Source of the DNA: Pavona decussata
Lineage: Eukaryota
Reading direction: 5' to 3'
NCBI GenBank assembly: GCA_977016875.1
Contig: CDRNST010000012.1
Span: forward strand, 2,046,001 to 2,110,000
Length of the DNA stretch: 64,000 nt
The notes below the pieces were generated by a model, which had not been told where the DNA came from, ran no database searches, and saw nothing but the letters and a program-made list of their open reading frames with translations. Positions 18,248 to 47,500 of the stretch are shown here, one piece after another (position 1 is the first letter of the stretch; every line of letters starts with the position of its first letter). The translations under genes were made by a program, and so were the position numbers.

Positions 18248-23228
<4,981 letters not shown>

Positions 23229-23960: not shown

Positions 23961-24704
23961 ACCCGCCGATGGCATTGTAAAACTCAACATTTGCCTCCAA
24001 AATCACTGCAAACACGGACTAAACGAAGGCAACATTGTTGTATTCGAGTAAAATATAGGCTAATTTAGTGAACAGTACTTTGTGAACTGAATTCGTAAGA
24101 CTTGTTTAATTTTCCTACGGGTTTCGCACGACTAGCGCAGACTTCATCAGGGAGTTCACCAAATAGAAGTTACCAGCTCGTATTTTACACAATGTAAATT
24201 GTAGAAACCGTTTTCAGATTTACGTAGATACGTTCCCCACTTATCTAAATGCCTGGAACAGAGTAAATATAAATATAGGAACCAAGAAAGTTATTTGGGC
24301 AAAGCGTGACTAAGGTGCAGCAAGTGTGTAACTTCACTTTTAGTAACAGTGGGTTTGGAGACAAACGTTGGACTTTTACAACTCGCATGTCAGATCTCTA
24401 TAACTCGGATGACAGATTTTTCAACTCACATATCGGATAACATCAATGATTGCATAACTTTTCTTCAGGGGACAAATTCTTTTAAAATAGCCTGCGCAGG
24501 CGTAAGCAGGGGGGGGGGGGGGGGGAGGGAGCGAGAAAAAATGAGAGGAGAATCCCTCCCTTTTTCTCTAACTATTCGCGAAATCCGCAACATTTAAATC
24601 CTAACAGTATGCAGGATGTTTGTCGCATAACCATGTGTAATGACCTTAAAGTCGTCCCTTTATGGATTATCAATATTTAGCATTTTATAACATTTCAAGG
24701 TAAT

Positions 24705-25163
24705 TAAATGACAAAATGCTCTTTGCTGTGAAACAGAGCAATGAGTTTTATACCAGCAAAATGCACGCTCTACGCAGGTTGATCCACGGCTTTTTCGAAA
24801 GTCGACGAAATAAAGTAATTTGGGGAAAGGGAAAATTGCATGATCTTTTAACTGACAAAAATCCCGGTGGGGGACAAAAGTGCACTTTGCTGTGAAACGG
24901 AGCGATTATTTTAATGCCAGAACAGCAAAACGAACCCTCTACGCACGTTGATCCTCGAATTTTTTGTAAGCCAAAGAAATAAAGTAATTCGGGAAAAGGG
25001 AAAATTGCATGATCTCTTAACTGACAAGAATGCTCTTTGCATGCTGTGAAGCGGAGCCATTATTTTTATGCCAGAACAGCAAAACGAACGCTCTACGCAA
25101 GTTGATCCACTGCTTTTTCGAAAGCCAAAGAAGTAAAGTAATTATGAAAAAGGGAAAATTGCA
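24705..25163. repeat. Three tandem copies of a ~150-bp unit
   Basis: GCTGTGAA...CTCTACGCA..TTGATCC...TAAAGTAATT...AAAGGGAAAATTGCA recurs at ~24720, ~24885 and ~25040. Confidence 0.85.
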
Positions 25164-26690
25164 GGAAAAAATAATTAAACCAAATTAAGGAGCAGCAATC
25201 AGTCTTGAACTCTGACGCTGCAAGTGCCTTTTCACAACCTTTCAAAAGTTGTTTACTACTTTTCAATTTCCTCCGCGAACAGTTTGTTTTTACTGATACA
25301 ACAGCAACAAAGGCACTTCTACCTTGTGAATCGGAAATAAAAACCAAAATGGATCGAAATCAACCATCTCAAGCCGTAAAAGCTGTTGAAATAAACTACA
25401 TGTTTTCTAACACGTCCGCTCATTTACAGCAATACAATGTCCTTAGACCTCCTTAGTTTATAACAATTTAGTGTTCGCGCGTTGTAGAAAGCCACACAAA
25501 TATGTCCTCTCAAGAGCTAGAGAAAACATTCTCCAGCAGTCGGATTCTGACTGCCCGGTTTAAAAGAGAAGGAAAAATTTGCCGTCGTTTGCTTACGTCC
25601 TTCTTCAAACGTGAAATTAGGAAACTTCAGGTGGTAGTCCGCGTAAAAGAAACAGCAAAAAAATGTACCAAAATGGGTGATACAGATGCAAAGTTATTGT
25701 TTTACTTACTAAATCTACTGGGTTTTTTTATGTTCTCCTTGCATCTTAGAAACTCCCCAATCAGTCTGTATTCCCTAATCAGTCTGTTGTTTTTTTTCAG
25801 TAGTAACGGGGCGAGGGGGGGGGGGGGGGGGGGTGGGTAGTTTTGTTTAACTATTTTGCTAAGTCCCCTCAGTTATTTTAGCCTTGCTACGGGCCTGTAT
25901 TTCAACGTACAAATGCTCTATGGTGTAAGACTACACGATCCTTTAACTGCATCAAGTGAGTAAGTAAAGGCTTCATTTAGAGAGGGTAACACCAGACAGT
26001 AGTAAAAACACTGATAAACCCATAGCCCTTGTTACAATATAAGAGCACCTAAAAGCCAAATTAATATTATAAAAATTCAATCACTATACACATAACAAAA
26101 TTAAAAAATCAAAGCAGTGCACGGTGAAAGAGACAGTTTGATCGTTAGTGTGAGTGAGAGTGATGATATTTACTATGAACTTGCACCGTCAACGGCAAAC
26201 AAACGTTGCAGCACTAGAAGAGGACGGAGTGCCACAAGTTTTGCGTTACGTTCAACAGGTGAATCACAAGCTTGTACAGCTGCCACCCCCCCCCCCCCCT
26301 TCCCAGGTTAGCTTTATCACCACTTGTGTAACGTAGAACACAGAATTTAAAAAAAAAAATACGGTTCTGGGAGATGGAGCTAATATTAGTGTGAGCTTAT
26401 TATTTATTGAAATATACTTGTTATTCTCATTAAAATGAGCTCCAAAAAATAAAACCCAAGATTCATTTAAAAGAAACTTTGTTTACAGATCCACCAAGTG
26501 ACCTATAAACTGATAACGATAATGCCCCCCCCCCCCCAAAAAAAATAATGCCCTCCCCCACCCCCTCCCTTATCCCTTGTTCTAGTTTTTGGTGAATCCC
26601 CCCCCCCCCCCCAAAAAAAAAAACGGTCAAAAATCATGCCCCCACCCTCAAAATCATTATAGCTCCCCTCTGCATAAATTATGAACTCTT

Positions 26691-26830
26691 CCTTAGCTCC
26701 CACGAGTTTTCTAGAGCTCAGCGGTAGAGCATCCGAACCAGTAATCGGAGGGTCTTAGGTTGGACTCCCGATAGGAGCACTCGGATTTCTGCTTTTCCAA
26801 GTGTGCCTGTGTCAGTGACTGAATAATACA
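26691..26830 (+). mobile_element. tRNA(Thr)-derived repeat, second copy (3' part)
   Basis: CCTTAGCTCCCACGAG...GAGCTCAGCGGTAGAGCATCCGAACCAGTAATCGGAGGGTCTTAGGTTGGACTCC...TGTGTCA matches the reverse complement of 18425-18560. Confidence 0.75.
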
Positions 26831-27114
26831 TCATTCTCGTTTATTTTAGAGAAACCAGTATACACTTGAAAACTGACAAAAAACCCGGTGGGGGACAGGG
26901 CCTCTACCAGTTTGGTAACTTGGTGTTAACACTCCCCCATCCCCCCCCCCCCTCTCTCTTTCTCTCTTAGAATCGGAGTCGACCATTAGATTTTTTATAC
27001 ACACCCTCCCTATAAAGAAAAATTAAATGATAAATAAAGCATCTGAATTCTTCACGTATTTCTCGACCGCTGTGCTTTTTATTCGGCTAACGACGTTTGA
27101 CCAGGACTTAGCAG

Positions 27115-27198
27115 CAACCTCGTTCCCAGGGTCTCTCATCTTTCCACCCCCTGGAGCGAGAGGGGGCAGGAAGATGAGAAACCCTGGAAACGAGGTTG
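27115..27198. mobile_element. Short hairpin MITE (~84 bp)
   Basis: CAACCTCGTTCCCAGGGTCTCTCATCTT...AAGATGAGAAACCCTGGAAACGAGGTTG, near-perfect inverted repeat. Confidence 0.85.
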
Positions 27199-27262
27199 GA
27201 CCTGACAGTTATTTATTTCACCAATGGCGAAGCGCTGTTACACGCGCCAGTCTAGATTGGGG

Positions 27263-27497
27263 AATAGGCCATTTTACAGTTGTGCGTTTAATGACCTGGC
27301 CTTGAATTGGAAGCGAGGCTGGGGGTAACCTTAATTGTTTTGATACAAACCTCAATGTTTTTCATATGTAAATGCAAACTAGTTAGCACAAACTACAAAT
27401 GAAAAGCAGTGAGGTTTCTATCAAACGAGATCACCCCCAGCCTCGCTTCCAATCCAAGCCCAAGTCACTTAAGTACACAACTGTAATTTGGCCTATT
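27263..27497. mobile_element. MITE (~235 bp) with ~60-bp TIRs
   Basis: AATAGGCCATTTTACAGTTGTG...GGAAGCGAGGCTGGGGG / CCCCCAGCCTCGCTTCC...CACAACTGTAATTTGGCCTATT. Confidence 0.85.
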
Positions 27498-27994
27498 GTA
27501 GTCCTAATGTGGGGGATTAGTATCCAGTAGTAAGTCGAGTGTTTTTCATAGACTACATGGCTGTTCAAGACATCGAGACACCTACAAGCATTGTCCTTGA
27601 TTTCGCTCCAAGTTCTTTTTTGTTTTTCGCATTTGCCAGAAATCAATGACTGGGTTGGGATAGCTTACATAAACTAAATAATTTTGCAGCTCGTTGTCGG
27701 GGAACACAAGTAGATATCTTCCTTGTCAAAATATCACCTCCCCAACAGTGAATAATTCTACGTATACAGAGGTGGGTTTAAAAGGCCCGCAAGACAATGT
27801 TTCTTTGATCATTTTAATAACCAGAGCTATTTTCAGTGCAAATCAAAAACTGGTCAACAATCCTTACTTAACTTCGTCACGTCACGCAATCCTCACGATG
27901 AAGATTGCGTGACGTGACGACCCAAAGAACGTCTGTCGGGGGTGGGAAGGGGGGGGGGGTCAAGTCAGGAAAGAGATAAAGACCAAACTGAGAG

Positions 27995-30900
27995 TATGTA
28001 TTTAAACCAATTTATTTTCTCAAAATCACCAACTACAAGTCTGAAAATGATTAATCTCGTTTGAAACAAATTGGAGACTGAACCCGAAAAAAAATCTCTA
28101 CCAAATTATGAAAGAAAAAGCCAAACCAAAACATTTGAACGCCGAACTTTTCTTAGACGCCACTGAAATATTTCCAATGAAACAAATGAAAATAAGCAAA
28201 AAAAGAAAAAAAGGAAAGACAGAAACCCTAGCTCTATGCTGCCTGCCGGCTGCGAAAAACCAGACTTAAAAACCCTTAATAGGGAAAAAAGAGTCTGGAA
28301 ACATAGTCCTGGACCCAATGCAGAACAGCAAGGCACCCAGGCGTGCCAAAAAAAACTAGCTCAACTGAAATGGTTAACACTTTAAAAGAAAATCTCCAGG
28401 ACCACGTCATTCTTCAAACTTCTTGTCATTAGGCACCTGCAAAAACAAAGTAAGTAATGATTACCTGTGTGCCAAAAAAAAAAATTGGTAAAAGAGGAAT
28501 TCTTTCTTCAAGTTTGTTGCTGTCATTTCATAACTTTTTCATATTCTTACCTTGTGGTATTCCTTATCATTTAATAAGCCAGCGATGCCCTCCTTCTTGA
28601 ATGTCTTGACCCCTTGCTCCTGCCACTGACCTGGTGGGATTTAAATGAAACCAAACTATTCTTTTACACATGTTCACACTTCAAAGCATTGGGGATGGGG
28701 GAAGGGGCATATGGAACTCAACTAACCTTTGAGAGATGCCAGTCCGCCAGATCCTCCTTCGTGGTACTTCCGTTGCTCCACAGAACTGCCAATCTCACTC
28801 CTAACAAACAGCTTCCCTATTATCCCACCCGCCTACACCCACTAACCTAAACTCAGCCCATGAGTAGTGACACTGCTGCATACATGATCTTTACTAACAA
28901 GTCTTACTTTAAACTTCTAAAGTAGTGTGAACTGTTGCTAACATTACTTTTAACAGTTGAATCCTGAGAACTAGAATTGTGGCAACCAAATCTGCTTGTA
29001 TTAATAGAAGTTCCAAATGTAATGTAACAGTTGAAGTTAGCAAAAACTTGTAGTTGAATTCAAGTTGTCATGATTCTACTGTTTCAAAAAGGTACAAAAA
29101 CATTGATCAGGAAACACAAAGAAACAGACCACAAAATCAATGGTGTGGCTGACCTGAATCTTCTTTCACAACTGTAAAACTGTCGAGACTAGAATGAAGC
29201 ATGCACTGTTTGCACACACAATGTTTACTTTACTCGCATGTACCTTACGGTATAAAATCTACTGTTATTATCTTAAGTTCAACTAGTACTTGTTTATTAT
29301 GATTGTGTTCTATTCTCTCTTTACTTTAAAGGCTGCTTTGCCACTTTTCAAGCTGTCAAGACTAGAATGAAGTATGCACTGTTTGCACACACACACACAC
29401 ATACAATCCTAATATCTACTTCTACCTCGTGTAACTTAAGATATGCACTTTTATCTTTTGAAACAATACAACCATATTATATTACTATTATACAAAGTAA
29501 GCACACATTTTAAGACAAAATACATACTATTCATCAATTGACAAGTTTAAAACTACCACTTAATAAAAAAAAAAAAATTCGAGAAGGTAGAACCTTACTT
29601 TTGAAATCCTTTGTCTGATTGTTTGCTCATTTTGGACTGAGATGCAGTACTGGTAGTTAAATTTCTCCAGTTGACACAAACTTCATTGAGCATGGAATCG
29701 GCTGCTGAATTGACAAGAGTATGCACTATGCAACAACTTTTTAAAACAGATTAAAAAAATGAACCTGTACCTTTGCTTTTGTAGGCTCGAATTTCGAAAA
29801 GGAAAGACAGCCATCTCATGGCTTCAACCTTAATAGCTGCAAAGAGATTGATGGAACATGCAACATTTATCACAAACGAAAGAAATTCAGGATATTGAAC
29901 GCTGAAAACAAATACCTGGGTGTCTGCTATTCAACGGAACAATTTGGCTGAGTAACTGTTGGAAAACATGCCGCATTCGAACAAGAAAAAAGACAAACAG
30001 ACGAAACTAAACTCGAAGCGTGACACCATTTACAACCGGTGGAATGGATGTCGCAAGCTGTAGAGACTAAAAACATATGCCAGGTTGCTGTACATGAAAG
30101 AACACACTGTAGAATGTCTTGAACTTACTGCCGTTGCAAAAACGACTGGACCGTCTGCTGTACAATCTGCTGCAAAATTTGAAAGAATATGCACCACATC
30201 CACACAAAAATGTAGACCGCAAAAGTAACTATACCTTTGTTTCTGTCAACTCGGAATTCCAAAATGAAAAGCCAACTGAAGGTAGCTTACCAAATAAAAT
30301 TCGACGTCTGTGAATCTGTAGAGAGAGCACGCACTGTTTGCCACAAAGGCCGAAATCATACTCGGCTTGAAACTGAAAATGGAGAAATACCTTGGTACCT
30401 GGAGTTCTTCACAAGAATCTGGCTGAGAAAGTGACTGCGAGAAACATGCAATGTTTTTGACTATCAGAAGAAAATTGAAACCTTGGAACACGGCTTGAAA
30501 GTGAAAGTCATCCTAAACTGTTGAGACTGAAGAAACATATGCACTGTTTGCTGCACACAAAAGAATGTATAAAAACAGAAATAAACCTGATCGAAGAATG
30601 ACAATTCAGTATCTTTCGGAACGAACCAAACTTCATCTGCCATGGAAATTGCTGTAAAACGGACGAGAATATGCACTATTTTCACAATAAACTTTCAAAA
30701 CTGAAACTGCAGATGCAAAAATTCAATCTGTACCTTGTTGCGCGAGGAACCTAGCGTAATTCCACTTTGAATTCCAATATAAGGCTTCTCTGATTTATCC
30801 TGAGTTTGCTGAAATATCGACAAGAACAAAATGCGTCCTTTGCAACAATACGAAATGCAGCAAAAACCTGGTTGAAAAGTAGCACCATCTTCGCAGATTG

Positions 30901-31985
30901 CTTGAACTGTACATCGCCTGGTGTAAAAGCGACCAGATCACACACAACATTGCAAGAAATGATCACAGAAAATTTTGGATAGCTTTAGTTTTCATGCCAG
31001 TACCTTTTTACCTAGAATCCAGTGTTAAGAATAATTCAAACAAGAACAGAGCACAATCCCATTTCAACATGGTGCCCGCTGTAAAATGAAAAAAATATGC
31101 AATGTTTTCGCTAGCTACAAGATACCAAGCACATTTGACTGAAACCTAACCTGCACCTACTAACATTTCCAGAAGCAGAAAGAGTGATTAACATATCATA
31201 CAAAAACTGCTAGACAGTTAAACTACCACCTAATGTCAAATATTTCCTTAGATTTTTTATTGAGCAACATTTTAATACTTTAAATTCAACACCTTGAGCC
31301 TGAAAATGATCTACACCAAATTCTGACTGCAAACATATTTTAACTACCATATGTGACAAGTCATTTTTTAATTTAATAAATTTAACACAAGTTATATTAT
31401 GCCTGCCTTGCACATAGGCCTTGATAATCCACTGCAACCCGAGACACAAGAACTGTATGCCAGCTTGTGACTAAAACACAAAGAGAGACAGCAAAAACCC
31501 AACCCCCAACAAACATACCAACTCTTTTAAACATTTAACCCAAGAAAAATAAAGCATTAAATAATAACTTTGTATGTGTCAATTTATTAAGCACTGAAGG
31601 GTGCTAATGAAAATACTACCTTAACTGAAGACTCCACATTAAATTATAATTTACTAATTCTAGGTTACATGAACATAACATGATAGTAACTTAGCTATTA
31701 ATGATAAAAACATGATTGTTTATAAAATGAAGATTAGAAACGAGAAAAATGTAACAAGATAATTATTATTCATACCTGGGCGAGGAGTCATGATCACTAT
31801 AACTATACATTTGATGATAACTCTTTCTGATGTTATTTGTTCACTGAAAACTTCGAACTGCCACAAGGAACAAACTATAGACCACTTTCTGTTTAAAATG
31901 CTTACGCATGTGGAATGGTTGGTGCACTGCACGAAAAACTCATCTTTCTACTCTTGACAACTGTGAACATTGACAGAATATGCAC
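27995..31985 (-). other. Putative unannotated spliced gene made of about 15-17 very short exons (orphan protein or lncRNA)
   Basis: Regular alternation of GT donors and CAG acceptors on the minus strand. Candidate exons: 31906-31960, 31012-31078, 30868-30917, 30734-30808, 30587-30651, 30482-30517, 30391-30422, 30291(or 30235)-30307, 30129-30169, 30013-30057, 29916-29947, 29771-29836, 29599-29701, 29325-29352, 29154-29179, 28727-28800, 28551-28630, and a terminal exon from 28436. AATAAA at 28016-28011 with a U/GU-rich downstream element. Confidence 0.65.
28011..28016 (-). terminator. Polyadenylation signal AATAAA of the micro-exon gene
   Basis: TTTATT on plus; GTTTGGTCTTTATCTCTTTC lies about 20-40 nt downstream on minus. 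Confidence 0.55.
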
Positions 31986-32549
31986 ATGTTTGGACACCTT
32001 AAAGTATTTAACTAAAATTGCTCATTACAGAAAGGGCTAGTTAATTTAACATATCTTAACTGCAAGCAGTATCTCATTCAATTAATTTCAATTTTCTTAT
32101 TAGTTCAACCGCAAATATTCAATAAAAATCAATTAAGATTGTGTTAGCAGTTACAGAGTGATTGTTTAAAGATGTTAATACATAAATGTTGATCTTTGCA
32201 TTTAAATAAGCCTTAACCTCATATTAGAACTGACCTTTCAATGGATTGTAAGCAATACCAGTACTTAAGCAATGGGCGTTTAATGGACATTTGGTCAACT
32301 TTTCAAACAAATGGAAAATGTCCGTCTTGTTAGAATACTACTTGGGCAGGAATCTAAACATGAACATCTAAGGCTCAACAGCTGGAACTTCCTATATTTT
32401 CAGACTTAACTCATTCCATTATGCACTGCACTGGGCACACACGTCTACAGAGATTCCAGATCTTAGCCGCCAATAAAGGTAAGCACATTTGGAGAGCAAG
32501 AACTTTACAGGAAGCTTTTTGGACTGAACATGGTGGCTGGCTACTGCAC

Positions 32550-35500
32550 TTGCTACTGCTACATTGGAGGGAAGATGCTTGATTTCTAGGGAGGCCACTC
32601 AAAAGCAGGATGCACAATGCCAAACCTTACATGGGAAGTTAGCTCACTGAAGCTTACTGGAATGGAATTCCTACTGCATTGGTCATGTCGCGCCAACGAA
32701 AAGGTGTAACTTGAAAGAACTGTCTAAACAACTGCAGAAAAAACTGCTGCCTGCTTCCAAAATCTCACTTGAAAGATTTGTTTTGAGGAACAGGGAGGAA
32801 ATCTGCTTGAAGGAGGTTGCCCGTTGCTGAAAATACATGGAGTCTCACCCACTACTGCTTATTGGATCAACTGTCCTATGGATTACTGGCTATGGCACTT
32901 GGGAAGATGTCTGCTAAAACAGAAATGCCCACTGCTTTCTACTGCTTACTGGACTGCTACTGGTATTACAGCAAAAATGGAACTTGAAACAACTGGATTT
33001 GGATAAATATCAAGACAAATGCTGAAGGTAGGATGTCCACTGCTTTAATTGTCTTACTTGGAACTTAGCCCACTTTGATTATGATAAAACACCACTGATT
33101 CACTCCACTTAGCTTCCTGAAAAAGATTGCTTCAAAGCACACACATATGTTCTCAACATAAACGAGGAAAAAAAATGCCAAAATTAATATTGGAACTAAG
33201 CCAAATGTCGATAGTATGAACAATACTTAGACCAAATGTTGATAGTGTGAACAATACCTAAACAAAGTTGAATGAGCTTTTATGTAGCCTTCACCTTGAT
33301 GATAGTAGGCCCAGAAAGTATGAATCAATCGCCATAACATGTTGCTACTGCTACGTTGGTGAGTAGGTGCTTGATGTCTAGGGAGGCCGCTCAAAAGCAG
33401 GATGCACAATGCTGAACCTTACATGAGAAATTAACTTGTTGAAGCTTACTGGAATGAAATTCGTACTGCACTGGCCATGTCACATCAACCAAAACATGTA
33501 ACTTGAAAGAACTGTTTAAACAACTGCAGAAAAAACTGCTGCCTGCTTCCAAAATCTCACTTGAAACATTTGTTTTGAGGAACAGGGAGGAAATCTGCTT
33601 GAAGGAGGTTGCCCGTTGCTGAAAATACATGGAGTCTCACCCACTACTGCTTATTGGATCAACTGTCCTATGGATTACTGGCTATGGCACTTGGGAAGAT
33701 GTCTGCTAAAACAGAAATGCCCACTGCTTTCTACTGCTTACTGGACTGCTACTGGTATTACAGCAAAAATGGACCTTGAAACAACTGGATTTGGATAAAT
33801 GTGAAGAAAAATGCTGAAGGTAGGATGTCCACTGCGTTAATTGTCTTACTTGGAACTTAGCCCACGTCAATTATGATAAAACACCACTGATTCACTCCAC
33901 TTAGCTTCCTGAAAGAGATTGCTTCAAAGCACACACATATGTTCTCAACATAAACGAGGAAAAAAATGCCAAAATTAATATTGGAACTAAGCCAAATGTC
34001 GATAGTATGAACAATACCTAAACCAAATGTTGGTAGTGTGAACAATACCTAAACAAAGTTGGATGAGCCTTTATGTAGCCTTCACCTGGATGATAGCAGG
34101 CCCAGAAAGTATGAAGCAATCGGCATAACATGTTGCTAGTGCTACATTGGTGAGAAGGTGCTTGATTTCTAGAGATGCCGCTCAAAAGGTGGATGCACAA
34201 TGCCGAACCTTACATGAGAAGTTTGCTCGCTGAAGCTTACTGGAATGGAATTCCTACTGAACTGGCCATGTTGCGCCAACCAAAACATGTAACTTAAAAG
34301 AACTGTTTAAACAACTGCCGAGAAAAATGCTGCCTGCTTCCAAAATCTCACTTGAAAGATTTATTTTGAGGAACAGGGAGGAAATCTGCTTGAAGGAGGC
34401 TGCATGTTGCTGAAAATACATGGAGTGCCACCCACTACTGCTTATTGGATCAACTGTCCTATGGATTACTGGCTATGGCACTTGGGAAGATGTCTGCTAA
34501 AACAGAAATGCTCACTGCTTTCTACTGCTTACTGGACTGCTACTGGTATTACAGCAAAAATGGAACTTGAAACAACTGGATTTGGATAAATGTGAAGAAA
34601 AATGCTGAAGGTAGGATGTCCATTGCTTTAATTGTCTTACTTGGAACTTAGCCCACTTCAATTATGATAAAACACCACTGATTCACTCCACTAAGCGTCC
34701 TGAAAAAGATTGCTTCAAAGCACACACATATGTTCTCAACATAAACAAGGAAAAAAAATGCCAAAATTAATATTGGAACTAAGCCAAATGTCGATAGTAT
34801 GAACAATACCTAAACAAAATGTTGATAGTATGAACAATACCTAAACCAAGTTGAATGAACTTTATGAAGCTTAACTTTACTTGGATGATAGTAGGCCCAG
34901 AAAGTATGAATCAATCGGCATAACATGTTGCTACTGCTACATTGGTGAGAAGGTGCTTGATTTCTAGAGATGCCGCTCAAAAGGTGGATGCACAATGCCA
35001 AACCTTACATGAGAAGTTTGCTCGATGAAGCTTACTGGAATGGAATTCCTACTGAACTGGCCATGACGCGCCAACCAAAACATGTAACTTGAAAGAACTG
35101 TTTAAACAACTGCAGAGAAAAATGCTGCCTGCTTCCAAAATCTCACTTGAAAGATTTATTTTGAGGAACAGGGAGGAAATCTGCTTGAAGGAGGTTGCAT
35201 GTTGCTGAAAATACATGGAGTGTCACCCACTACTGCTTATTGGATCAACTGTCCTATGGATTACTGGCTATAGCACTTGGAAAGATGTCTGCTAAAACAG
35301 AAATGCCCACTGCTTTCTACTGCTTACTGGACTGCTACTGGTATTACAGCAAAAATGGAACTTGAAACAACTGGATTTGGATAAATGTGAAGAAAAATGC
35401 TGAAGGTAGGATGTCCACTGCTTTAATTGTCTTACTTGGAACTTAGCCCACTTTGATTGTGATGAAACACCACTGATTCACTCCACTAAGCTTCCTGAAA

Positions 35501-37250
35501 AAGATTGCTTCAAAGCACACACATGTTCTCAACATAAACAAGGAAAAAATGCCAAAATTAATATTGGAACTAAGCCAAATGTTGTTAGTGTGTACAATGC
35601 CTAAACCAAGTTGAAGGAGTTTCTATGTAGCTTAACGTCACCTGGATGATATAGCAGACCCAGAAAGTATGAATCTATCGCCATAACATGTTGCTACTGC
35701 TACGTTGGTGAGAAGATGCTTGATTTCTAGGGAGGCTGCTCAAAAGCAGGATGCACAATGCCAAACCTTACATGGGAAGTTAGCTCACTGAAGCTTACTG
35801 GAATAGAATTCCTACTGCACTGGCCATGTTGCACCAACCAAAACGTGTAACTTGAAAGAACTGTCTAAACAACTGCAGAGAAAAATGCTGCCTGCTTCCA
35901 AAATCTCACTTGAAAGATTTGTTTTGAGGAACAGGGAGGAAATCTGCTTGAAGGAGGTTGCATGTTGCTGGAAATACATGGAGTGTCACCCACTACTGCT
36001 TATTGGATCAACTGTCCTATGGATTACTGGCTATGGCACTTGGGAAGATGTCTGCTAAAACAGAAATGCCCACTGCTTTCTACTGCTTACTGGACTGCTA
36101 CTGGTATTACAGCAAAAATGGAACTTGAAACAACTTGATTTGGATAAATGTGAAGAAAAATGCTAAAGGTAGGATGTCCACTGCTTTAATTGTCTTACTT
36201 GGAACTTAGCCCACTTTGATTATGATAAAACACCACTGATTCACTCCACTAAGCATCCTGAAAAAGATTGCTTCAAAGCACACACATATGTTCTCCACAT
36301 AAACGAGGAAAAGGAAATTAACATTGGACCTAAGCCAAATGTCGATAGTATGAACAATACCTAAACCAAATGTTGATAGTATGAACAATACTTAAACCAA
36401 GTTGAATGAACTTTATGAAGCTTAACTTCACCTGGATGATAGTAGGCCCAAAAAGTATGAATCAATCGGCATAACATGTTGCTACTGCTACATTGGTGAG
36501 AAGGTGCTTGATTTCTAGAGATGCCACTCAAAAGGTGGATGCACAATGCCGAACCTTACATGGGAAGTTAGCTCACTGAAGCTTACTGGAATGGAATTCC
36601 TACTGAACTGGCCATGACGCTCCACCCAAAACATGTAACTTGAAAGAACTGTTTAAACAACTGCAGAGAAAAATGCTGCCTGCTTCCAAAATCTCACTTG
36701 AAACATTTGTTTTGAGGAACAGGGAGGAAATCTGCTTGAAGGAGGTTGCATGTTGCTGAAAATACATGGAGTGTCACCCACTACTGCTTATTGGATCAAC
36801 TGTCCTATGGATTACTGGCTATGGCACTTGGAAAGATGTCTGCTAAAACAGAAATGCCCACTGCTTTCTACTGCTTACTGGACTGCTACTGGTATTACAG
36901 CAAAAATGGAACTTGAAACAACTTGATTTGGATAAATGTGAAGAAAAATGCTGAAGGTAGGATGTCCACTGCTTTAATTGTCTTACTTGGAACTTAGCCC
37001 ACTTTGATTATGATAAAACACCACTGATTCACTCCACTAAGTTTCCTGAAAAAGATTGCTTCAAGGCACACACACATGTTCTCAACATAAACAAAGGAAA
37101 AAAATGCTAAAAAACTTAAAATTGAAACTAAGCCAAACATTGTTAACTAGTATGAATAATGCCAAAACCAAGTTGAATAAACTCTTATGTAGCTACTTCA
37201 CCTGGATGATCTAGTAGACCCAGACAAGTATGAACCAATTGCCATAACAC
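32550..37250. repeat. Tandem array of about six ~790-bp units
   Basis: Anchor GTTGCTG(A/G)AAATACATGGAG at 32823, 33615, 34406, 35201, 35964 and 36752 (periods 792, 791, 795, 763, 788). High inter-unit identity; most periods are not multiples of 3. Confidence 0.97.
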
Positions 37251-40200
37251 TTTTGAAGGAGAAATACGGGAAGACCTTGAAAGGGATTGGACGACAGAGG
37301 TCACATGTCCCCACCAACTTGATACTGATTACGATTTGTGCTAGGAATCCCCAGGAAATTGAGACTTTTCGCCAAGAACCACAATCAGCTAGGGTTAACT
37401 GGTCAAGAAGGATGAATGGATGTGCTTTCCAAAACTTTCACTTACAGGGAAGTCCAACTGCCTTCATTCCTATCCACTGCACAAGCTAACAAGGCAATGC
37501 TGCCCCAACAAACTGGAACTTAGTTGGATGGTCAGCGGAAGGACTTTAGATCGCTTACTGGGGGTGGACATCCAACCACATCCCCTGCTACTGACACTTT
37601 TGCTTATTTGGACATAAATGGAGCTTTTAGGAAATGCCAACTGATGTATCTTACTTGATTTTGCACAATCATTAGGATCCCCATGTGCACCATTGCTTCA
37701 CTGCGTTTTCCTGAAAAATACTGCTTACAAGTATATGTCCTAAACCTAAGAAAGTAGTTCTCTGCTTCCATGCTGTACCAAATGAATAGATGAACTTGCT
37801 AAATTCAACATCCATCAGAGAATTCACCACTCTTACTACGAACTGCACACATTGAACACATCTACGCCATTGAAGGACACAAAAACACACTGGAACATGA
37901 ACTATAAACACTTTCAGGAGTAAGTTCTCTTTGGAGTGCTTACCAGATTGGACTTTTCTCTGCACTGGCTAATACTACAGCAACCATGGACATAAAAAGA
38001 GCAGTCTTGCAGATCAACAGAAAGCTTCACACTTGCAATTGCTGAACCTTAACTGGAATTTAACACTTTGCTGTTCATAAATTCCCATTTGTCTTCCTGC
38101 AAAAAACTGTTGCAAAGCACACATACATGTTCCAAACCTGACCAATAATGCCAATAGATATCACTTTGTGAACGAAACTTTTATAAATCCTTTGCCCAGA
38201 AAAATGGATGATTTGAGTTACCTTGTGTTGGTGATTGATGCATGTTGGGTGCTCCATAGTTTTAGCCAACTTTGGTAATTTGAAAAAGTTTATAGGGATG
38301 AGCTTGTCCAAAATTTGACCAACGATTGCAATTCAGATTTGATTTAGTGAAAGAATGTTCCAGGAATAAATTGTAACTTTGAGGAGGGCTATCATTTAGG
38401 CCATGTATCAGCAAAACTGAGGGAGTTTTGGTCATCTTCAGAATTTCCACCATGCAACACAGTCCAAAATAGGTAGCTTAAAGAAATGACAACACTTGCT
38501 CTGGAACCAAACAATGATCACTGAAGGTAGCGGGACTTTTGGTTTTATGGTGTTTACTGTCACTTTGGTACCAAAGGAACTTGAAAGCGCTGCTGTGGCA
38601 AAATCAAGCAGAAAAGAGTGCACAAACGAGGACGCTGTATAGCACTTGACATTAAGTGACCTACTGCTCAATGAACTTGCTTTGGTAACAATGAAACTTG
38701 CCAACCATGCAGGCATGTGAAGGCAAAATGCGGGAAGCTGACCAGCCAATGAAACTTTACACGGATGGAATTAAGCAGGTTTTGGCCCCAATTAATTGCT
38801 GCCGTTATTTCCCTGAAAAAAAAAGAACTGCTCCAACGCACACATTTTCCTAACACAGACAAGCTGCTAAAACCATAGCATTGTCAAAACAAAACCGAAT
38901 TTTAAGGCGACAGGTAAAATTGCTGCAAATAAATGTACAAAAAATCTTGTACAAGATGACTACAGTCAATTACCTTAGGTTACATGTGGTGGGATAGGCC
39001 TACACTGTAGATACTCCACGATGCTTGCTCGGTTGACAAAGATTTATATGACCAGACAAAGCATGCGCTAGCACTGGAGCTGAACGTCATTTCAATCTCT
39101 GCACGCTAGGGTGGGAGACCAAGAACTGCTTGGAACATCACTGGATCAAGATCCGCCTGGTTTTGGATTCCCTCCAAATATAATAAGATTTTTTTCCGAT
39201 TCATCTGAAAAAAGTTTCAAAACAAGCACACATTTTCCGACAAAAAAGGAATATGGCATTACCTCGGGAGCAACGAAAGAAGTCAGCGAGAGTGAATGGC
39301 TTGTCATGATGTGCTTCTGAATAAGATTGGACATACATCCTTCAAGAAAATATAGGCATGGAGAGACTGACTTTCAGAGGTTGAAACAGGAACCGTCTGT
39401 TTTGGATTTCAGTTCTCAATTTGACACAGGATGTTTCCACGACACTTTGGTCACAAGCCTGTCTTCCACAGTCCTACTGTACTGTAAAACTGTCTCGTTC
39501 ATGCTGCAAGAGGGCAAAAATACCACACGCATATCCCAAACAAATTACCAGCATTGGCAACCATTTACATGCATGAAAAAAAGAACAAAAGCTTTGGAAA
39601 ACCTTGCAAAAATTTATCTGGCATTTACCTTTTTTGCAAACGCAAAACGATACATCACCGAGATCCATAGATGACTCTTTTTCCCTTGAATTTGCAGTGC
39701 CTTCTTGCTTTATGAACTGAAAAAGCTTCAGAGCATGCACACTTTGGGAAAGACAACCAAAGAGAATTTGGACACAGGACCACATTCTTACTTGCCATTT
39801 CAGTACACTAGAGTCCATTCTGTTAACAGCTTCAGAGAAATTTCATACAGTTTCTTTTTTCATAGGTTATTAGTGAGAGCCAAAAAGTTGATCCCCTTGC
39901 TACAGAATCTTCCGTCAAATGTATGGAAATCAGAATCTTCACTACATCTCTCTGTTCTTGACCTTTACATCAGGATGCTAATCTTTGGAACAGAAACAGG
40001 AAACAAAGCCCCAAATGCATACCTTACAATGTTTTGTCGCAGTCGTTGTCAGTAGCGTGGAGAATGAACCAGGAATGATCAGAATTATGTTGATTGAACC
40101 GTTTGGGGAATGGCTGGCCAACTTAACTGGGTTTTCTACTTTCGTTGCACAGTTTTTGATGGACAATAAACTCCTGTAATTTCTACCAGTTTGCATATGG

Positions 40201-42926
40201 ACCCGGGGTTATCATGTGAAGTTTCAGGAAGCCTGTGCCTGCCGGTAACCTTCCTTAAGAAGAGTTGGATGAACTAGGCTGCGCTTATGCCAAACTAACC
40301 GCAGGGCTGTACTTTCCAGCAATTATCCCAAGGATTGCGGGGCAAAATGAAGGTGAAGGACATCAAATGCAAAAACAAAACAACACCATTCTCAGTTTGG
40401 TAGATGGAGGACTTGCGCAATCCTAAGAAAACTTTATTATCACTTGACAGCATATAAAACACCCCAGGGCTTGGAATGCATCAGACTAAGATGACTTGGG
40501 TTCTATAACTGAAATAACTTCATAGCACACCACGCACAGGAAAATAATGTTTCTTTTATGCTAAATTAGGTTTAACTTGATCACCAATCAACAGAAGGTT
40601 GGTACATTGCTACTAGCTTACTAGGCTTGATGTTGGCCTCCTTCAGAATGCCACGCGCTTTTATCTATCCATCGCAATCCTCCTGCGTGTATTTCAAGTT
40701 ATGGCAACTTCAGCTGCATAACGATAAAAAGACAAAAACACACAACCCTACCCGAAGAGCATTGAGATGAACAAAGAGGACACAAAGGGCCATCTACACT
40801 CTACGTATTGATTGAAGATATTGTGTAACCTTGTAATGACTGTGGTTGAATCCCTGGATGCAATAGTTTCTTACTCCTGATCCCACAACTTATTGTAGCT
40901 TTGCCATACCATTTCACTACAGTTCACCTTTGTAGACATTGAAATCCAACTACTTAACTAAATGAGCGACGACTCTTCATTTCAATATCCGACTGCCACT
41001 TAGAATCTCTTCCCTTTGACCATTGCTGAACATGAGTAAGTTTTGATGTTATTGCTTACGGTTTAATTTAAGTTCTCGTCTCTTCTCTTTCAAAGCCATG
41101 TAGTTTGCATGCCACTTTCCTTTTTTCCGCTTTGGATCAAATCAAAAGAACATACGTTGCAAAAAAAAACTCCTAACACTACTACATTTTTTAATTAACA
41201 AAAATTAGCAAGTAATACATGTATGCAGCAGTGTCAAAAATTAGTGCCAGTCATAGTTTTAGACTTACATGGGCTGAGTATTATCAGTTTCCTTACCCTC
41301 CCATTTGTGAAAACTTTATTTCATTCAAACTTCACTCTATATAATATAGGCTCTATATATGAATTCAGTTCCAATTAATAACATTATCACAAGCCTTAGG
41401 GCTGGCCTCTCTGGCTTATCCTGAAGACATGCTCCACCAGTGAAAGCTCCTCCACTTTGTGATTCCAATACAAACTGAAGTTGACAAAAGCAAATACTTA
41501 AAAACTGGTAAATTTTCTGTCGCATTCTGAAGCAGCATAAAAAGAACAACTAAAAAGAAATGGAGACTATTTTCTCCATACACTGTACTATAAAGAAATG
41601 GGCAAATGCTGAGCATTTACCAATTGATCACTTGACGCAAGCCATCTCTGTCCAGATTGGCAATCCTTTCTTTATTCATCCAGGTGACACAATGGCGGAC
41701 GGTAATCTCTGTTGCAGCACACTTGAAAAGAAACGATTTACATTTAAAATCACTCTTCTATATTCACACAATATGTGCTTTGAACATGTAACATAATTTT
41801 GTAAACTCAGAATTTTGAGTTTAGGTGTTTAATTCCTCTCCAATTTTTTTGCCAACCACTCTAAGAAGTGATAATCTTCTTTTGACGCCATCAAATCCTT
41901 TCCAGAGCTCAGGACTAAACTTTTAGTTCACTTGCCCAACGGCTAGTAAGAGGTCTGATTTCACTAGCCAAAACAAATGTTTCATTACCCATACAGTTTC
42001 AGTAATTTGCTTTGCAGAAGTGAAGGGAGTAAACCTCCCACAACTGAAGGTTTTTTTTCACTGTTTATGATTTGCGACTGAAGTTTCAAGTTTACCTTGA
42101 CGTGAAAAAGCCTAACCAGTGGACATGCAGCCCAGAAAGTGGCTGAATATAGGTATTGTTCTTTTGTGATTGTTTAATAGTTTCGTCTATGTTTTCTGTC
42201 CAGCACTCAACGCTTCACAATGACACTGAATTTTACCAGTCTGTGGATACCATTGGCCTTGACCCCTGCTTTCCCATTGTTTCACACCACATTAACCCAA
42301 AGAAAAACATACCCAAAAATAAAAAGTAAATAAGTCATTTCAACAATGTGCCATCACAATGCAATACCTTGTAGGAGATTTTGGTGTGCTTTTAAGGGTG
42401 ATGCATGGACAATACAGCTGGAACATCAGCTGAAGAAATAAAGCTCAACCTATAGCTGTGAAAGCAATCAACACATATTAGGACATGCAAACTATTTTTT
42501 ACACTAACTTGTTTAGTGTTATAAACTTTTATTTACAAAACTTTCAAATAAATAATATTTACAATAAAAAATAGTTGTCTGTAGGTATAAAATGTATCAA
42601 ATTTCCAAGGCAAAACATCAAGATAGGAATAAATTTCTTCAGTTCATTTTCTACCTAAATATAAATAGAACTAGACAATACCCGACTATAAACCACTGTA
42701 ATAAAAAAAACCCCTAGTACTTCTGGATTTTCCAACTTCCTGGTCTTTTGGCAGGATATTCTCACTGCTGGATATAGCACTGGAATAACCCTAGACGATT
42801 TAATAACCGAGATAATTTTAGAAAACGATTCTCGCGCTTTCAGATCTCTCGACTGGAATATCAGTAGGATTTACCCTTTTCTTAAATTCTCTTTTAGTGG
42901 CTTCAGGCTAGGTTCAGTTTCTAATA

Positions 42927-43313
42927 CTACGTTTTCACACTTCTCCGAGTTTGACTACTGGTACTTATTCTTTGAAAGAAATCGTCGATACCTAGCATAT
43001 CTTCATCGTCTTGGTACGACGCAGTCATGTTCCATCCAAGTCCATTTGATGACTCATGCCACTCGTAAGAATCATCTACTTTCCGACGTTTCACCTTGTT
43101 CATACATCTCTCCGTGATCTCTTCATTCAGTCTCTGTACTATCAATTCCAATACCGCGTTCCGTAACATGTCTGGATCCCTTTTCCTTTTGTTTGCTTTC
43201 TTCTTTTCCAAGGAAGTCGTTAGCAGAGACCAGAGTTCCTTATCTGTGTAAAGCGAGTGTTTTCCATGTTTGACTCTGACACTTGGACGATTGCGGTACA
43301 TGCTATTTCGCAT
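42927..43313 (-). CDS. Intronless SERTA-domain-like (SERTAD/CDCA4/IER-type) small regulator, 128 aa from first ATG
   Basis: LWSLLTTSLEKKKANKRKRDPDMLRNAVLELIVQRLNEEI fits the SERTA pattern (SLxK...P.L...VL....R...EI). Basic KVKRRK and acidic-hydrophobic tail DDEDMLGIDDFFQRI. AATAAA at ~42533-42528. Confidence 0.65.
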   Translation of the reverse strand: MRNSMYRNRPSVRVKHGKHSLYTDKELWSLLTTSLEKKKANKRKRDPDMLRNAVLELIVQRLNEEITERCMNKVKRRKVDDSYEWHESSNGLGWNMTASYQDDEDMLGIDDFFQRISTSSQTRRSVKT

Positions 43314-43804
43314 GAGAAAACAAGTAAACGAGTTACGTTTTGTAGGAGACGCACTATCGGTCAAGTTTCGTCAGCGCTAAACTATGAAGAATTAGCAATT
43401 CTGTAAGTCCTATTTCCAATTTCAGTTCTCCTTTTCAGTGTTCCTTGTAATTTTGAAACGTTTCTTTTCAGAATAAGTCGTTTCTCGTCCGATTTTCCGA
43501 AGCGAGAAACGCAACAACACTTGACCAATACTTGCTGAAACACGAAGTTCTTGAACAAAAGCGAAGAAATCAACTGCAAAATCGTCTCGTTCACGAGATT
43601 CCTCCGTCAATGAACGTTGTCTGCTTAATTCCTTGCACTAAAAGAGCGAAGATTTGAGTCTAAAAGGGTATCAAAGCAGACTAACCCTTCTACCTACTTA
43701 CTTCCACCAACGATGCCCCAAACACTGAACAACGCAACAAACGTTCACCCTACGTAAAGGCACACCCAACCGGATAAACTGGAAAAACCGGTTCTCCTCA
43801 TGTT

Positions 43805-43920
43805 TCTAACCAATCATCTTTCGAGAACTTGAGAAAATTAGCCAATCGCAACCAATCGCAAGCTGCGTGAATAATAAATTTGACGTCAAAGGGTTTACGT
43901 CATGATTGTTTACGTGCGCG
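43805..43920 (-). promoter_or_regulatory. Promoter module upstream of SERTA-like gene: three CCAAT boxes plus CRE/ATF sites
   Basis: CCAAT at 43810, 43842 and 43852; palindromic TTTGACGTCAAA (core 43881-43888); TTACGTCA at 43895-43902. Confidence 0.65.
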
Positions 43921-44590
43921 TGCAAGCTTGCAGTCTTCGAGGGGAAGTACTCGTGAGATACCGATCTATATTTATATATGTATAAAAAAAGAAAGAAACA
44001 GGGAATATTTTTAGTTTAATTACGCAATTTATTTCCTATCGCTTTGTAATAATTTTATTTTTCCTCTCTTTGAAGGGTAGTTTCTGAATACGTACTTGTT
44101 CGTGCACGTTGCAACTGACACGCTCGCACGCGTGGGTCTTCCTGTATGTGGCCTTCTGATCGGCAAGAAAAACAGTAACAAAATTCATACAAGGCACCAA
44201 ACTGCCTTCAGAACCTTCTTGTCAAACACAAATAAAGAAAACTTGTAACCGTGACGGATATTTTTTTTTTAACAGCCCTTTACTTTGTTTGACAGCTCTT
44301 GACAACTCTGATGCTCTTTCATTTCGATTGGCCGAAAAAATGCAAGAACTGTACATTTGTTGGGATTGTTCAGTTTCACTTTCATTTTCGACAAATGACT
44401 GGTTGAAATAACAAACTTTGTCAAGAACTAATGTTATGCAGTTGTGAGTGTGCACTGTAACACTATTAATAACACCATTATTTTAACGCTATTTTGGGTC
44501 AAACACTTCTGAGTTTTGTGAATTAACGTAACTAAACAATCATCAACATTCTGAACATTGATATTTTTATTATTATTTACTTATAAATTA

Positions 44591-47500
44591 TCATATTTCC
44601 TTCATCATCCAAAATGAGCCTGTAAGAACAGTCGTGCCAGGATGTGAATTTGGTAGCTGTTGCAAAGAAGGGGGAGTGGGTGGGGGTGGAGGGGGAGGTG
44701 GGGGTGGGGCAAGAGTAGCTGTTTTTTGTGGAAGTGATGATGACGATGATGACAGTGATGATGAAGATTGCAGGCTGTTGGTTAAACATGAATTCTGTTT
44801 ATTAGCGCCTAGAATATCAGGGTTTATTCCACATTTATGAAGACTTGTTTCAGAATCTTGCACACTCATACTGTCATTTTTCACCACAGACTTCTGAACC
44901 TTGCAGTCATCATCCTGCATGTCATGCTCATGTTCCATTTCTAGTTCGCATTCTTGACCTCTTAATAATGCAAGCTGCAACAAAAGTTTGTCACAAAAAA
45001 ATCAGCAACTTGGACAAAGTAAAAAAGAAAACATACTCTGAGATGCCTAAATTTCTTGTTAATACCCACTACTCCTCAAGAAGGAAGGGCTTATTAGAGA
45101 GGGGGGCTTGTTTTTCATTATGAGTTTTGAACAAAACTTAAAATTATTGGCTTTTCCACAACTTCATGATACACCGAAATGAAACATAGCACTGATGGAT
45201 TGTCAGTTTCCTTAATCTTATGAAAAGTGATTAAAATAATATTCATTTGGTAATTCTTCCTGTTTTTGTAGCTATTTGGCTTTCAATGTTACACATTTCA
45301 GATGTACCTATTTAAGGGTGATGCCTTCTAATACGGTGGACAGGTATTTTTGCACAGTTTAATTACTATGTGGGAAACATAGATCTTACAATAGCAAGGT
45401 CTACTGGAATCCAAAGTGAAAATTTTATAGCTTCAGTAATATTGAAAATTGCATGGCTATCCCTAATAATATTTTCATATTCTTGGATTCCAATAACCCT
45501 TGCAAAGATCCCATAAGCTGTCCAAAAAGACCTTTGTGTCAGTAGGCACCATTCTGAAACCTGAGTTTCTTGGACTGTCCAGAGATGNNNNNNNNNNNNN
45601 NNNNNNNNNNNNNNNNNNNNNNNNNNNNNNNNNNNNNNNNNNNNNNNNNNNNNNNNNNNNNNNNNNNNNNNNNNNNNNNNNNNNNNNNNNNNNNNNNNNN
45701 NNNNNNNNNNNNNNNNNNNNNNNNNACAAAAGGAAGAACTGTCCTTACTCTACATCTAATAATTATTGGATTTATGTCAGTTTGCTAAGATTTTAACATT
45801 TCGACATTATTAATTCTTTGTCACTACATGCCGCGATTAGCTGTATTGTATAAATCAGTAACATAACTTACTTGAGAGGAAGTAAAGAGACTTGAGCTGG
45901 CCTTGACTGGCGAGACTTGAGTACAGTACTGATAACCCAGATGTTTGTAAAATTCACACTTATCGGTTGTTGAGAGGTAGATGGCTGTACAGCCTAACCT
46001 ATAATGACAACAGGAAATTGACAAAATTCATGGCAACACAACGGGAAGGGCTAAGGCTACACCCTCATAAAATCTAGCATCTAATACAAAGCTGCAGTTG
46101 ATTATGTAACAATAATATTAACCCACATCTAACAAAATCCCAATTTTGGTCAGACAAGATATCTGAGGAATTGTAACAAAACACCATTGATCATCACTTC
46201 ATAACTGAAGAGACAAAAAAACATTCAAGAATATATATATTACCTTAAATTATAGTACCAACTGTTAAATTAATATTCACAATATGCGGTACTTAATGGT
46301 AAAGCTCATCAACCCTTTAATGGTCTGGGTGATCCTCAAACTATTAATGACCACATAATTCATCAGGGAATGACAGCATGGCACTTTTGCAACAGTGTTG
46401 TTGCTTTCATTACTTTATGGATTGTTGGCTGATTTCAGAAGTCTTGTGATTGCTGTTTTGGTTGAGCATGACCAAATGCCTACGATAAACAACCTTGAGA
46501 GAAATCAGGTAAACCTAAAACCAAACTCATCCCAGTTGGCTTAGTTAAAAATTCCCAGAACACTGCCTGATATTAATAAGCAAATCATGAAGGTCAAATC
46601 ATGGCCAGTGAACCATGTTTGAAAACCTGGTCGACTCAATGAACAGAAGTGAAATTGGCTTGAATATTACAGACAGTTACATAATCAAAATAACAACACT
46701 TTTTCAACACTTTCATTATTATTTTCAACAAATATATAAAGACAATTAACCGCATATAGCTTGCTGCAATACTACAGTTTGTTAATTAGGGACTAATCTA
46801 ACTTATCAGTATGGAGATCTAAATCGTAAAATCATATTAAAATAGTATTAAGATGCTATACTAATTACATAACATAGAGCCATAAATCCTAATCACTGAT
46901 CCTAATCCTAAATCCATTAAGAAACTCACTGAGAAGCATATGATTCTGTCAGCTGCATGAGCTTTTTTCCAAGTCCACATCCTCTTCTTGCCTTTTCTAT
47001 AAGAACTTGATGAGGATAACAGAAATATCAAATAATATAATACTTTAAATATTTTAATAAATAAATAATGTTTGAGTCACTTACTCATAATGGATTGACT
47101 TTCACAGCACAATAATTTTTATGGTTCTAATTCTACAACATTTTTTATCTAAAGGCTACATTTTAAGAGTGATCCATTTTCCTTGAAATTAGTCCCTCAG
47201 GCATAATATTTTTGTTGTGGTCTTAATTTTTCTTTTGGTTTAAAAATTCTCAAACCAGTTTGATTTTCATTTCCCTTTTCTTGGATCCTGGTAATGAATA
47301 TTGCATAAAGGAAAATAAAACTTAAACTGGTTTGAAAATTGTAAAACCGAAAATAAAATAAATTATGTGCCCTGAAAACTAACAGCCATACAAAATAACC
47401 TCGTAACACCTTTAGATTCTCTGAGAAAAAACAGTTGACCTACCCCCCCTCCCCTCCCCTCCCCCTCAGGGCACCTCTCCTTGATCTGCCACAGATAATC

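Follow-up and report, generated by a model that had tools for sequence, protein, structure and literature searches.

What is made from a 9-kb block of coral DNA that holds a large tandem array and no long open reading frame (ORF)? The block in question (32,400-41,300) lies in a 64,000-nt stretch of the Pavona decussata genome (hereafter, the window; positions 2,046,001 to 2,110,000 of the forward strand of contig CDRNST010000012.1, assembly GCA_977016875.1), whose coordinates are used throughout. An initial annotation had proposed it to be a giant-exon long non-coding RNA (lncRNA) or a precursor of PIWI-interacting RNAs (piRNAs), perhaps joined to a neighboring micro-exon chain in one minus-strand transcript. 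We found the block to be present as continuous, very abundant RNA with no sign of splicing, and the earlier interpretation as a whole is partly supported. By analogy with hsr-omega of Drosophila and LL2R of chicken, this RNA may be a long non-coding scaffold loaded with U1-type 5'-splice-site motifs, a reading to which we give an even chance. The parts of the block are as follows.

32497..37249, minus strand (inferred RNA sense strand): single-locus tandem array of six units of 763-795 bp, with RNA contigs from 34,928 upward.
37250..41300, minus strand: single-copy, non-coding, repeat-free part of the block (hereafter, the unique part), with RNA contigs to 40,927, and to ~41,026 in one RNA run (X5).

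The occurrence of the block in sequencing runs was profiled based on sampled words of 31,900-41,300. The 14 runs guessed to be RNA (five studies) contained 12-43% of these words, the four DNA-like runs (a sixth study) contained 74-78%, and the run of a congener contained 14%. Assembled contigs were available on 34,928-40,927 (6 of the 9 kb, comprising three array units and 3.7 kb of unique sequence) for three probable RNA runs from three studies (X1, X5 and X6) and for the DNA-like run X15. X1 covered 30 of 30 bins of this region, and X5 and X6 covered 28 of 30 each. The k-mer depth of the contigs in the unique part was 3,000-8,000 in X1, 300-800 in X5 and 570-1,500 in X6; with the array included, it ranged from 300 to 72,000 in the three RNA runs, with higher values in the array, where the depths of all matching contigs were summed and many contigs fit two places. 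In X15, a single contig of 8,620 nt had a uniform depth of 97.7 throughout the unique part, as genomic DNA would. The total assembly size was 734 Mb for X15 and 130-177 Mb for X1, X5 and X6. Because a 602-Mb genome sequenced at the depths of the latter three would assemble completely, their small assemblies identify the signal as RNA, and we are highly confident that the block sequence in these runs is not genomic DNA.

No sequence-skipping joint of the intron type was detected in any run across 34,928-40,927, with the reservation that contig assembly drops rare spliced forms. Given an abundant RNA without sign of splicing, the block reads as a giant exon. The proposal of a giant-exon lncRNA thus stands for the 6 kb that are covered at high depth in three runs, free of intron joints and non-coding, and its strand is suggested by indirect signs given below. 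The RNA contigs are at most 1,243 nt long, which is explained by the 1.8-2.7% of positions that differ from the reference. Adenosine-to-inosine editing was ruled out as the source of these differences, as they are balanced among types, transversions included, and are common to the runs, which identifies them as polymorphism. Six loose contig ends could not be matched to the window even with 3 mismatches allowed, nor did any of them coincide with a canonical splice site; hidden local splicing at these ends was therefore rejected, and they are probably chimeric contigs or insertion polymorphisms. One X5 contig extends ~99 nt past 40,927, to ~41,026. A structural polymorphism, a 17-nt insertion behind 40,676, was observed in the RNA contigs of both X5 and X6.

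The claim that the 9-kb block holds an array of six near-identical ~790-bp units was confirmed, with the correction that the array itself takes up only 4.75 kb. The features of the array are listed here.

u1 to u6, starting at 32,550, 33,342, 34,133, 34,928, 35,691 and 36,479, with the end of u6 at 37,249: the six tandem units.
35128..35377 in u4 (alignment columns 201-450), minus strand: conserved unit core, which holds both CTACTGCTTAYTGG sub-repeats (minus strand CCARUAAGCAGUAG).
~37,606-37,754 (also delimited as 37,614-37,752), 37,911-38,154 and 38,661-38,872, minus strand: decayed partial unit copies (profile positions ~387-634), detected by nhmmer.

The units have lengths of 792, 791, 795, 763, 788 and 771 bp, with start-to-start spacings of 792, 791, 795, 763 and 788 bp, and a weaker register of the array reaches back to ~32,497. 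As Tandem Repeats Finder was run with a maximum period of 500, it did not report the 790-bp period. The pairwise identity of whole units is 91.3-95.4%, and they differ by indels of 1, 2, 3, 4, 7, 27 and 31 nt that break the reading frames, as had been noticed at first. The internal sub-repeats that had also been reported are real: CTACTGCTTAYTGG occurs exactly twice per unit, so 12 times in the array and nowhere else in the 64-kb window (zero in shuffles), and a ~31-bp duplet is found in four units, with one copy only in u4 and in u6. Conservation is concentrated in the core, where columns 201-450 are 95-99% identical among the units (13 of 250 columns variable), whereas the unit flanks are 62-90% identical (42 variable among the first 200 columns; 62-89% identity in the last 200). 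A profile of the six units detected the three decayed copies at 37,606-38,872 with E values of 3.8e-8, 1.6e-4 and 1.9e-4. As these lie directly upstream of the array on the minus strand, the array is the recent end of an older series of local duplications. The count of six units is that of the assembly; sequence specific to single units is confirmed for u4-u6 by short DNA contigs, none of which spans the array. The only two joints seen go back by one unit, 767 and 788 nt (36,310/35,544 and 37,102/36,315), one in the DNA run and one in an RNA run. They fit variants of the repeat register and suggest that other haplotypes have hybrid or extra units.

The block does not appear to encode a protein, in line with what had been proposed. 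The largest ORF listed in 32.4-41.3 kb has 116 amino acids (aa), which is not beyond chance, and the longest stretches without a stop reach 83 aa (array) and 122 aa (block), where shuffling of the array yields 106 aa on average. Each frame has 71-99 stops across the array, and none of the five longest ORFs had a significant match in Pfam. A protein-coding repetitive exon is ruled out by these ORF statistics, by the indels that are not multiples of three and by the Pfam result. A known RNA family (a MALAT1-type 3' end, a small nucleolar RNA (snoRNA) or a microRNA) was likewise rejected, as Rfam gave no match over 27.8-42.6 kb, neither at the gathering threshold nor at E<=1. The unit folds no better than its shuffles (z = +2.45 for the minus and +0.89 for the plus strand) and the 120-nt folding windows resemble those of a control region, so a stable RNA structure was dismissed for want of a signal at either scale. 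A tandem snoRNA or microRNA host of the SNORD116 type was rejected on the same Rfam and folding results, though a wholly new small RNA is still conceivable.

The recurring element of the array is the donor-like motif GTAAG (GUAAG in RNA), of which each unit has four, all kept in six of six units. In the array it reaches a density of 5.0 per kb on the minus strand and is missing from the plus strand. Having been noticed in the array, the motif was then tested in the 4 kb of the unique part as independent data, where it occurs 13 times on the minus and twice on the plus strand. The count of 13 is about threefold that of dinucleotide shuffles (4.3+-2.0) and was reached by 0 of 300 of them, and GTAAG is the most over-represented of the 1,024 pentamers there (z = 4.1). 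It was not over-represented in the micro-exon chain or in the XPO1 control. Scored with an approximate position weight matrix of human sites, donor-like sequences number 9.7 per 2 kb in the array on the minus strand versus 2.6 in shuffles (3.7-fold) and 5.9 versus 3.2 in the unique part, and acceptor-like sites in the array number 5.5 per 2 kb versus 10.1 in shuffles. In five of the six units an AUUAAA follows 4 nt after CAA|GUAAGA; u2 had no hexamer match in the scan. Such a donor-before-hexamer arrangement is the one through which U1 silences a poly(A) site (U1-mediated poly(A) suppression).

To what extent is the locus private? The earlier statement that no miniature inverted-repeat transposable element (MITE) or short interspersed nuclear element (SINE) is seen in these 9 kb was checked by searches against the 602-Mb genome. 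BLAST of one unit gave a single candidate at first look, which resolved into just the six copies, and a 33-mer from the unit core, with up to 3 mismatches, occurred six times in the genome, always within the array; no unit copies were found in JGI metagenome contigs. A part of a transposon, a MITE or SINE and a dispersed satellite are thus ruled out, as there are no copies at other loci. The query 37,250-41,300 had one candidate, which is itself, and 27,901-32,500 had 11 trivial short matches. Repeats begin only at ~41,900 in the query 41,301-45,580, with one dispersed repeat at 41.9-42.2 kb. By comparison, the spacer at 23,700-27,900 had 3,616 repeat candidates, two 10-kb control stretches had 1,453 (XPO1 region, 5-15 kb) and 1,272, and the flank queries overall ranged from 771 to 3,616. 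Among the matches listed for the control at 45.8-55.8 kb, four sites per 10 kb were hit, and the flanks have about one dispersed repeat per 2-3 kb. The depletion of transposable elements therefore holds (1 candidate versus 1,272-3,616), and the depleted zone is larger than the one first described, at ~27.94-41.9 kb.

27940..41900 (~14 kb), minus strand: zone free of dispersed repeats and depleted in CpG; a possible full transcription unit composed of the block, the micro-exon chain at 29,150-31,990 and the AATAAA at 28,016.

The observed/expected ratio (o/e) of CpG is 0.18-0.59 over this zone. Across 32-42.5 kb it is 0.18-0.45, which resembles the gene body of XPO1, and it is 1.06-1.34 at gene X, the gene directly upstream of the block on the same strand. 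Provided that gene-body methylation of the invertebrate kind operates at this locus, the low ratio marks a long-standing transcription unit.

The same private, repeat-free sequence bears on two other explanations of the RNA. In the first, the array arose as a young, neutral duplication within transcribed DNA, so that the RNA is real and the repeats and GUAAG motifs are functionless, as decayed exon-intron modules or hitch-hikers. The units do differ by 5-9%, the register joints, found in contigs of DNA and RNA alike, hint at instability of the array, 1.8-2.7% of positions are polymorphic, there is no structure signal and the nearby copies show ordinary decay. A neutral origin does not readily account, however, for a core that is 95-99% identical next to flanks of 62-90%, for a GUAAG excess that extends to the non-repeated 4 kb, for a 14-kb zone free of dispersed repeats between flanks with one per 2-3 kb, or for the very high abundance of the RNA. 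We consider it unlikely. The second, which is the other half of the original proposal, is that the RNA is a single-stranded precursor from which piRNAs or further small RNAs are processed. The piRNA pathway is active in cnidarians, and a long, U-rich, apparently one-stranded RNA without splicing would suit it. Yet the locus holds no transposon sequence to guide silencing, the high steady-state level of the long form is unlike efficient processing, and the repeats are direct only, without self-complementarity. Being free of transposons, the locus is an unlikely transposon-directed piRNA cluster, which does not speak against one of the pachytene type; taken together, we regard a small-RNA precursor as highly improbable.

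The features that point to the ends of the transcript are the following.

41335..41360, minus strand: candidate core promoter (TATATAG / TATATTATATAG), read from the letters only, followed by GUAAG at 41,296 and 41,268.
32,284 (ATTAAA), 31,588 (AATAAA) and 28,016 (AATAAA, at the edge of the repeat-free zone), minus strand: candidate 3' ends.

The minus strand is inferred to be the sense strand. Between 29,501 and 40,501, all 23 successive windows of 500 nt have more A than T on the plus strand, a skew that falls to ~0 above 41,001; the minus-strand XPO1 gene has a skew of the same sign. The initial annotation had called the minus strand U/G-rich, of which the U-richness was borne out and the G-richness was not, since the GC skew is ~0 within 32-40 kb. 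Poly(A) signals are scarce on the minus strand: AAUAAA occurs once in the unique part below 41 kb (40,438), and neither AAUAAA nor AUUAAA occurs between 40,438 and 37,250, while the plus strand has four AATAAA between 37,176 and 40,165. The depth of X1 climbs toward lower coordinates, a weak indication of the 3' bias expected of a minus-strand RNA, and the acceptor-like and donor-like modules in the block are oriented as those of the micro-exon chain. The one-sided distribution of GTAAG and the surplus of donor-like over acceptor-like sites in the array, described above, point the same way. As the excess of U over A begins below ~41 kb and an X5 contig reaches ~41,026, the TATA-like stretch at 41,360-41,335 is a candidate for the transcript start. 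Most likely, a minus-strand transcript runs from ~41.3 kb through the unique part and the six-unit array.

The alternative start lies in the upstream neighbor.

42,510-43,950, minus strand: gene X, directly upstream of the block, with an exon-1 donor near 43,701, a 128-aa coding sequence at 43,313-42,927 and an AATAAA near 42,535.

The block RNA could be a read-through or distal-poly(A) isoform of this SERTA-like gene, or a downstream-of-gene transcript. Gene X is on the same strand, it has the only nearby promoter that resembles a CpG island, and RNA contigs pass 40,927 in its direction. Such a product stays among the rivals because no CpG-rich promoter was found at 41.3 kb and the CpG-poor domain reaches the gene X poly(A) site near 42.5 kb, where it begins. 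The U>A skew, however, is absent from 41-43 kb and begins below ~41 kb, a dispersed repeat intervenes at 41.9-42.2 kb, and gene X is ended near 42,535 by its AATAAA and a T-rich tail; the depth sustained in three studies would need enormous read-through. On balance, an origin from gene X seems very unlikely.

Beyond the array, the transcript might continue into the micro-exon chain (29,150-32,000, minus strand). The chain has 12.6 acceptor-like sites per 2 kb versus 7.2 in shuffles and no enrichment of donors, and neither nhmmer nor low-stringency BLAST detected homology between it and the array unit. The repeat-free unit thus has complementary halves, with a donor-rich and acceptor-poor array and an acceptor-rich chain. 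Read by eye, the chain runs into stops after a few putative exons. The exon-like modules of the block, with a polypyrimidine tract, CAG and then GTAAG, remain unspliced in the RNA contigs, which is a reason not to take splicing of the chain for granted. Its downstream end contains one further set of candidates.

28,407-28,832, minus strand: three exon-like segments flanked by good splice-site sequences, whose shared frame stays open up to a stop (...KYHEGGSGGLASLK / GQWQEQGVKTFKKEGIAGLLNDKEYHK / VPNDKKFEE*), ahead of the AATAAA at 28,016.

Searched singly, the ORF-like exons at 28.4-28.85 kb had no Pfam family and no match among 1.84 billion protein representatives (a weak test, given the 33-aa query), and were rejected as a conserved protein with that proviso. 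With the unspliced modules of the block, the stops in the chain and these exons without relatives, the whole 14-kb unit may be non-coding.

The chain is also central to a fourth explanation, in which the block is a long (first) intron, or an unprocessed precursor, that belongs to a spliced gene of very high expression. The exons of this gene would be the micro-exon chain and perhaps a module at 42,455-42,368, and the contigs would represent nascent or intron-retaining RNA. Donor-like sites at 41,296 and 41,268 just after the candidate start, the acceptor-like modules in the block and the acceptor-rich chain downstream (12.6 per 2 kb) are all as expected from an intron, and rare spliced forms are lost in contigs. 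A depth of thousands over 6 kb, with contigs as long as 1,243 nt and three runs free of intron joints, is not expected; the block is free of transposons, unlike the XPO1 region at 5-15 kb with its 1,453 candidates, and the scarcity of minus-strand poly(A) signals fits a retained exon. We judge the intron explanation to be distinctly unlikely.

Returning to the scaffold reading, a minus-strand transcript of ~9-13 kb would be made by RNA polymerase II and remain unspliced and non-coding. In vertebrates, donor motifs together with few poly(A) signals prevent premature cleavage of long transcripts (telescripting) and hold RNA in the nucleus or on chromatin. In mammals, a 7-nt U1 motif is reported to drive the retention of RNA on chromatin (10.1101/310433), and 5' splice site motifs are reported to keep RNAs in the nucleus (PMC9074902). 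In a similar way, the U1-type motifs and the paucity of poly(A) signals could keep the coral transcript full-length and probably nuclear or chromatin-bound. The tandem array would multiply the conserved 250-nt core, much as in hsr-omega-n, NEAT1 or LL2R, and so create a multivalent landing platform, which would bind the U1 small nuclear ribonucleoprotein (snRNP) and other splicing or heterogeneous nuclear ribonucleoprotein (hnRNP) factors. This platform is proposed on account of the many GUAAG and the scarce poly(A) signals, by analogy with vertebrates. Its stronger form, a non-bilaterian architectural lncRNA of ~9-13 kb, of the hsr-omega / LL2R kind, that gathers U1 snRNP together with splicing factors on chromatin or in a nuclear body, is tentative and rather doubtful. 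If it were true, nuclear condensates seeded by repeat RNA would predate the cnidarian-bilaterian split, or a striking convergence would have occurred.

Several observations weigh against the scaffold reading. The runs are labelled as RNA by guess, and their contigs carry no strand, ends or level. The within-species differences of 1.8-2.7% speak for no strong constraint, and the block RNA has no detectable structure. Taken as a blind 1,024-way test, GTAAG alone fails correction for multiple testing. The unique part lacks GTGAG and TGAGT, so what is in excess there is GUAAG specifically, not donors in general, and the matrix used for donors and acceptors is, as stated, approximate. At the upstream end, the missing CpG-rich promoter at 41.3 kb and the continuation of the CpG-poor domain to 42.5 kb, beside gene X, count on the same side.

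The neighborhood of the block was also surveyed, leaving aside a run of N at 45,588-45,725. The promoter of gene X at ~43.8 kb resembles a CpG island (o/e 1.06-1.34) and has cAMP response element (CRE) sites (TGACGTCA and TGACGTAA) and three ATTGG (CCAAT) boxes; judged from these letters, the layout looks like that of an unmethylated, inducible gene. Its product had no match in Pfam; by its ESM-Atlas features it would be a SERTA-domain protein (score 0.90, 26 of 30 matches). An exon-like module at 42,368-42,455 on the minus strand consists of TTGCATG, a pyrimidine tract, CAG, 88 nt and AAG|GTATTG. It lies just past the gene X poly(A) signal and upstream of the block, and could be a decayed module or belong to the long unit as an upstream exon. 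Two further genes are found in the same 64-kb window.

205-2,133, minus strand: exons of XPO1/CRM1.
55,402-55,890, minus strand: COMMD1.

XPO1 and COMMD1 are neighbors on human 2p15 as well, which may be a trace of ancient microsynteny. Between and beside them are located a C2H2 zinc-finger gene and an ARMT1-like gene (20,712-23,228 and 51,459-52,813, both on the plus strand). Two matches to the transfer RNA (tRNA) model were observed at 138-211 and 18,468-18,540, both on the minus strand, with 32 and 51 bits; the weaker one, inside the XPO1 region, may be the head of a tRNA-derived SINE.

To our knowledge, functional lncRNAs are almost uncharacterised in cnidarians, and literature searches turned up no description, in corals or other cnidarians, of an abundant RNA that is built of repeats and has a single exon. 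With a private 790-nt repeat for fluorescence in situ hybridization and a high abundance, the locus is an easily probed candidate. It could show whether repeat-RNA scaffolds and U1-motif retention or telescripting exist outside Bilateria.

How does the locus compare with known systems? Xist and RSX carry tandem repeats in large exons, and pachytene piRNA precursors are long single-stranded RNAs; nothing at the coral locus points to the chromosome-wide silencing of the former two. MALAT1 and NEAT1_2 are very abundant, unspliced, non-coding nuclear lncRNAs of mammals with a length of several kb, and the coral RNA is likewise abundant, several kb long, non-coding and without splicing. It differs from MALAT1 in that no triple-helix or tRNA-like 3' end was found at 27.8-42.6 kb (Rfam, E<=1), and we know of no macro-tandem array in MALAT1 or NEAT1.

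Closer parallels are offered by two RNAs that do contain arrays. LL2R of the chicken lampbrush chromosome 2 is a one-strand transcript of a tandem array that recruits snRNPs and is depleted in poly(A) signals, with >5 donors versus 1-1.5 acceptors per 2 kb, a >3-fold excess (10.64898/2026.03.19.712899). The coral array has the same tendency (9.7 donor-like versus 5.5 acceptor-like sites per 2 kb), but it is far smaller (4.75 kb) and its donor/acceptor ratio is ~1.8 and not >3. The coral locus also has no retrotransposon promoter, and its RNA, abundant in bulk libraries, is not known to form an oocyte lampbrush loop. The hsr-omega-n RNA of Drosophila (93D) is a >10-kb nuclear transcript whose repeat part is unspliced and of which about half is tandem repeats; these ~280-bp repeats are private to the locus and turn over fast, and a recurring donor-like nonamer, ATAGGTAGG, binds hnRNPs (10.1101/695486). 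There is no sequence similarity to the coral locus, whose repeats are 790 nt in six copies and not ~280 nt in many, and no omega intron, ORF-omega or microRNA was seen there; the host is a cnidarian. As neither hsr-omega nor LL2R is related in sequence, membership of a family cannot be claimed, and the likeness is one of features. The first of these features is an unspliced, array-bearing transcript over 34,928-40,927. The excess of donor-like motifs with few poly(A) signals on the presumed sense strand, in which GTGAG is depleted, is a possible further parallel. As in hsr-omega-n, the repeats are private to their locus, and a donor-like motif recurs in them, in the coral as GUAAG / CCAGUAAGCAGUAG.

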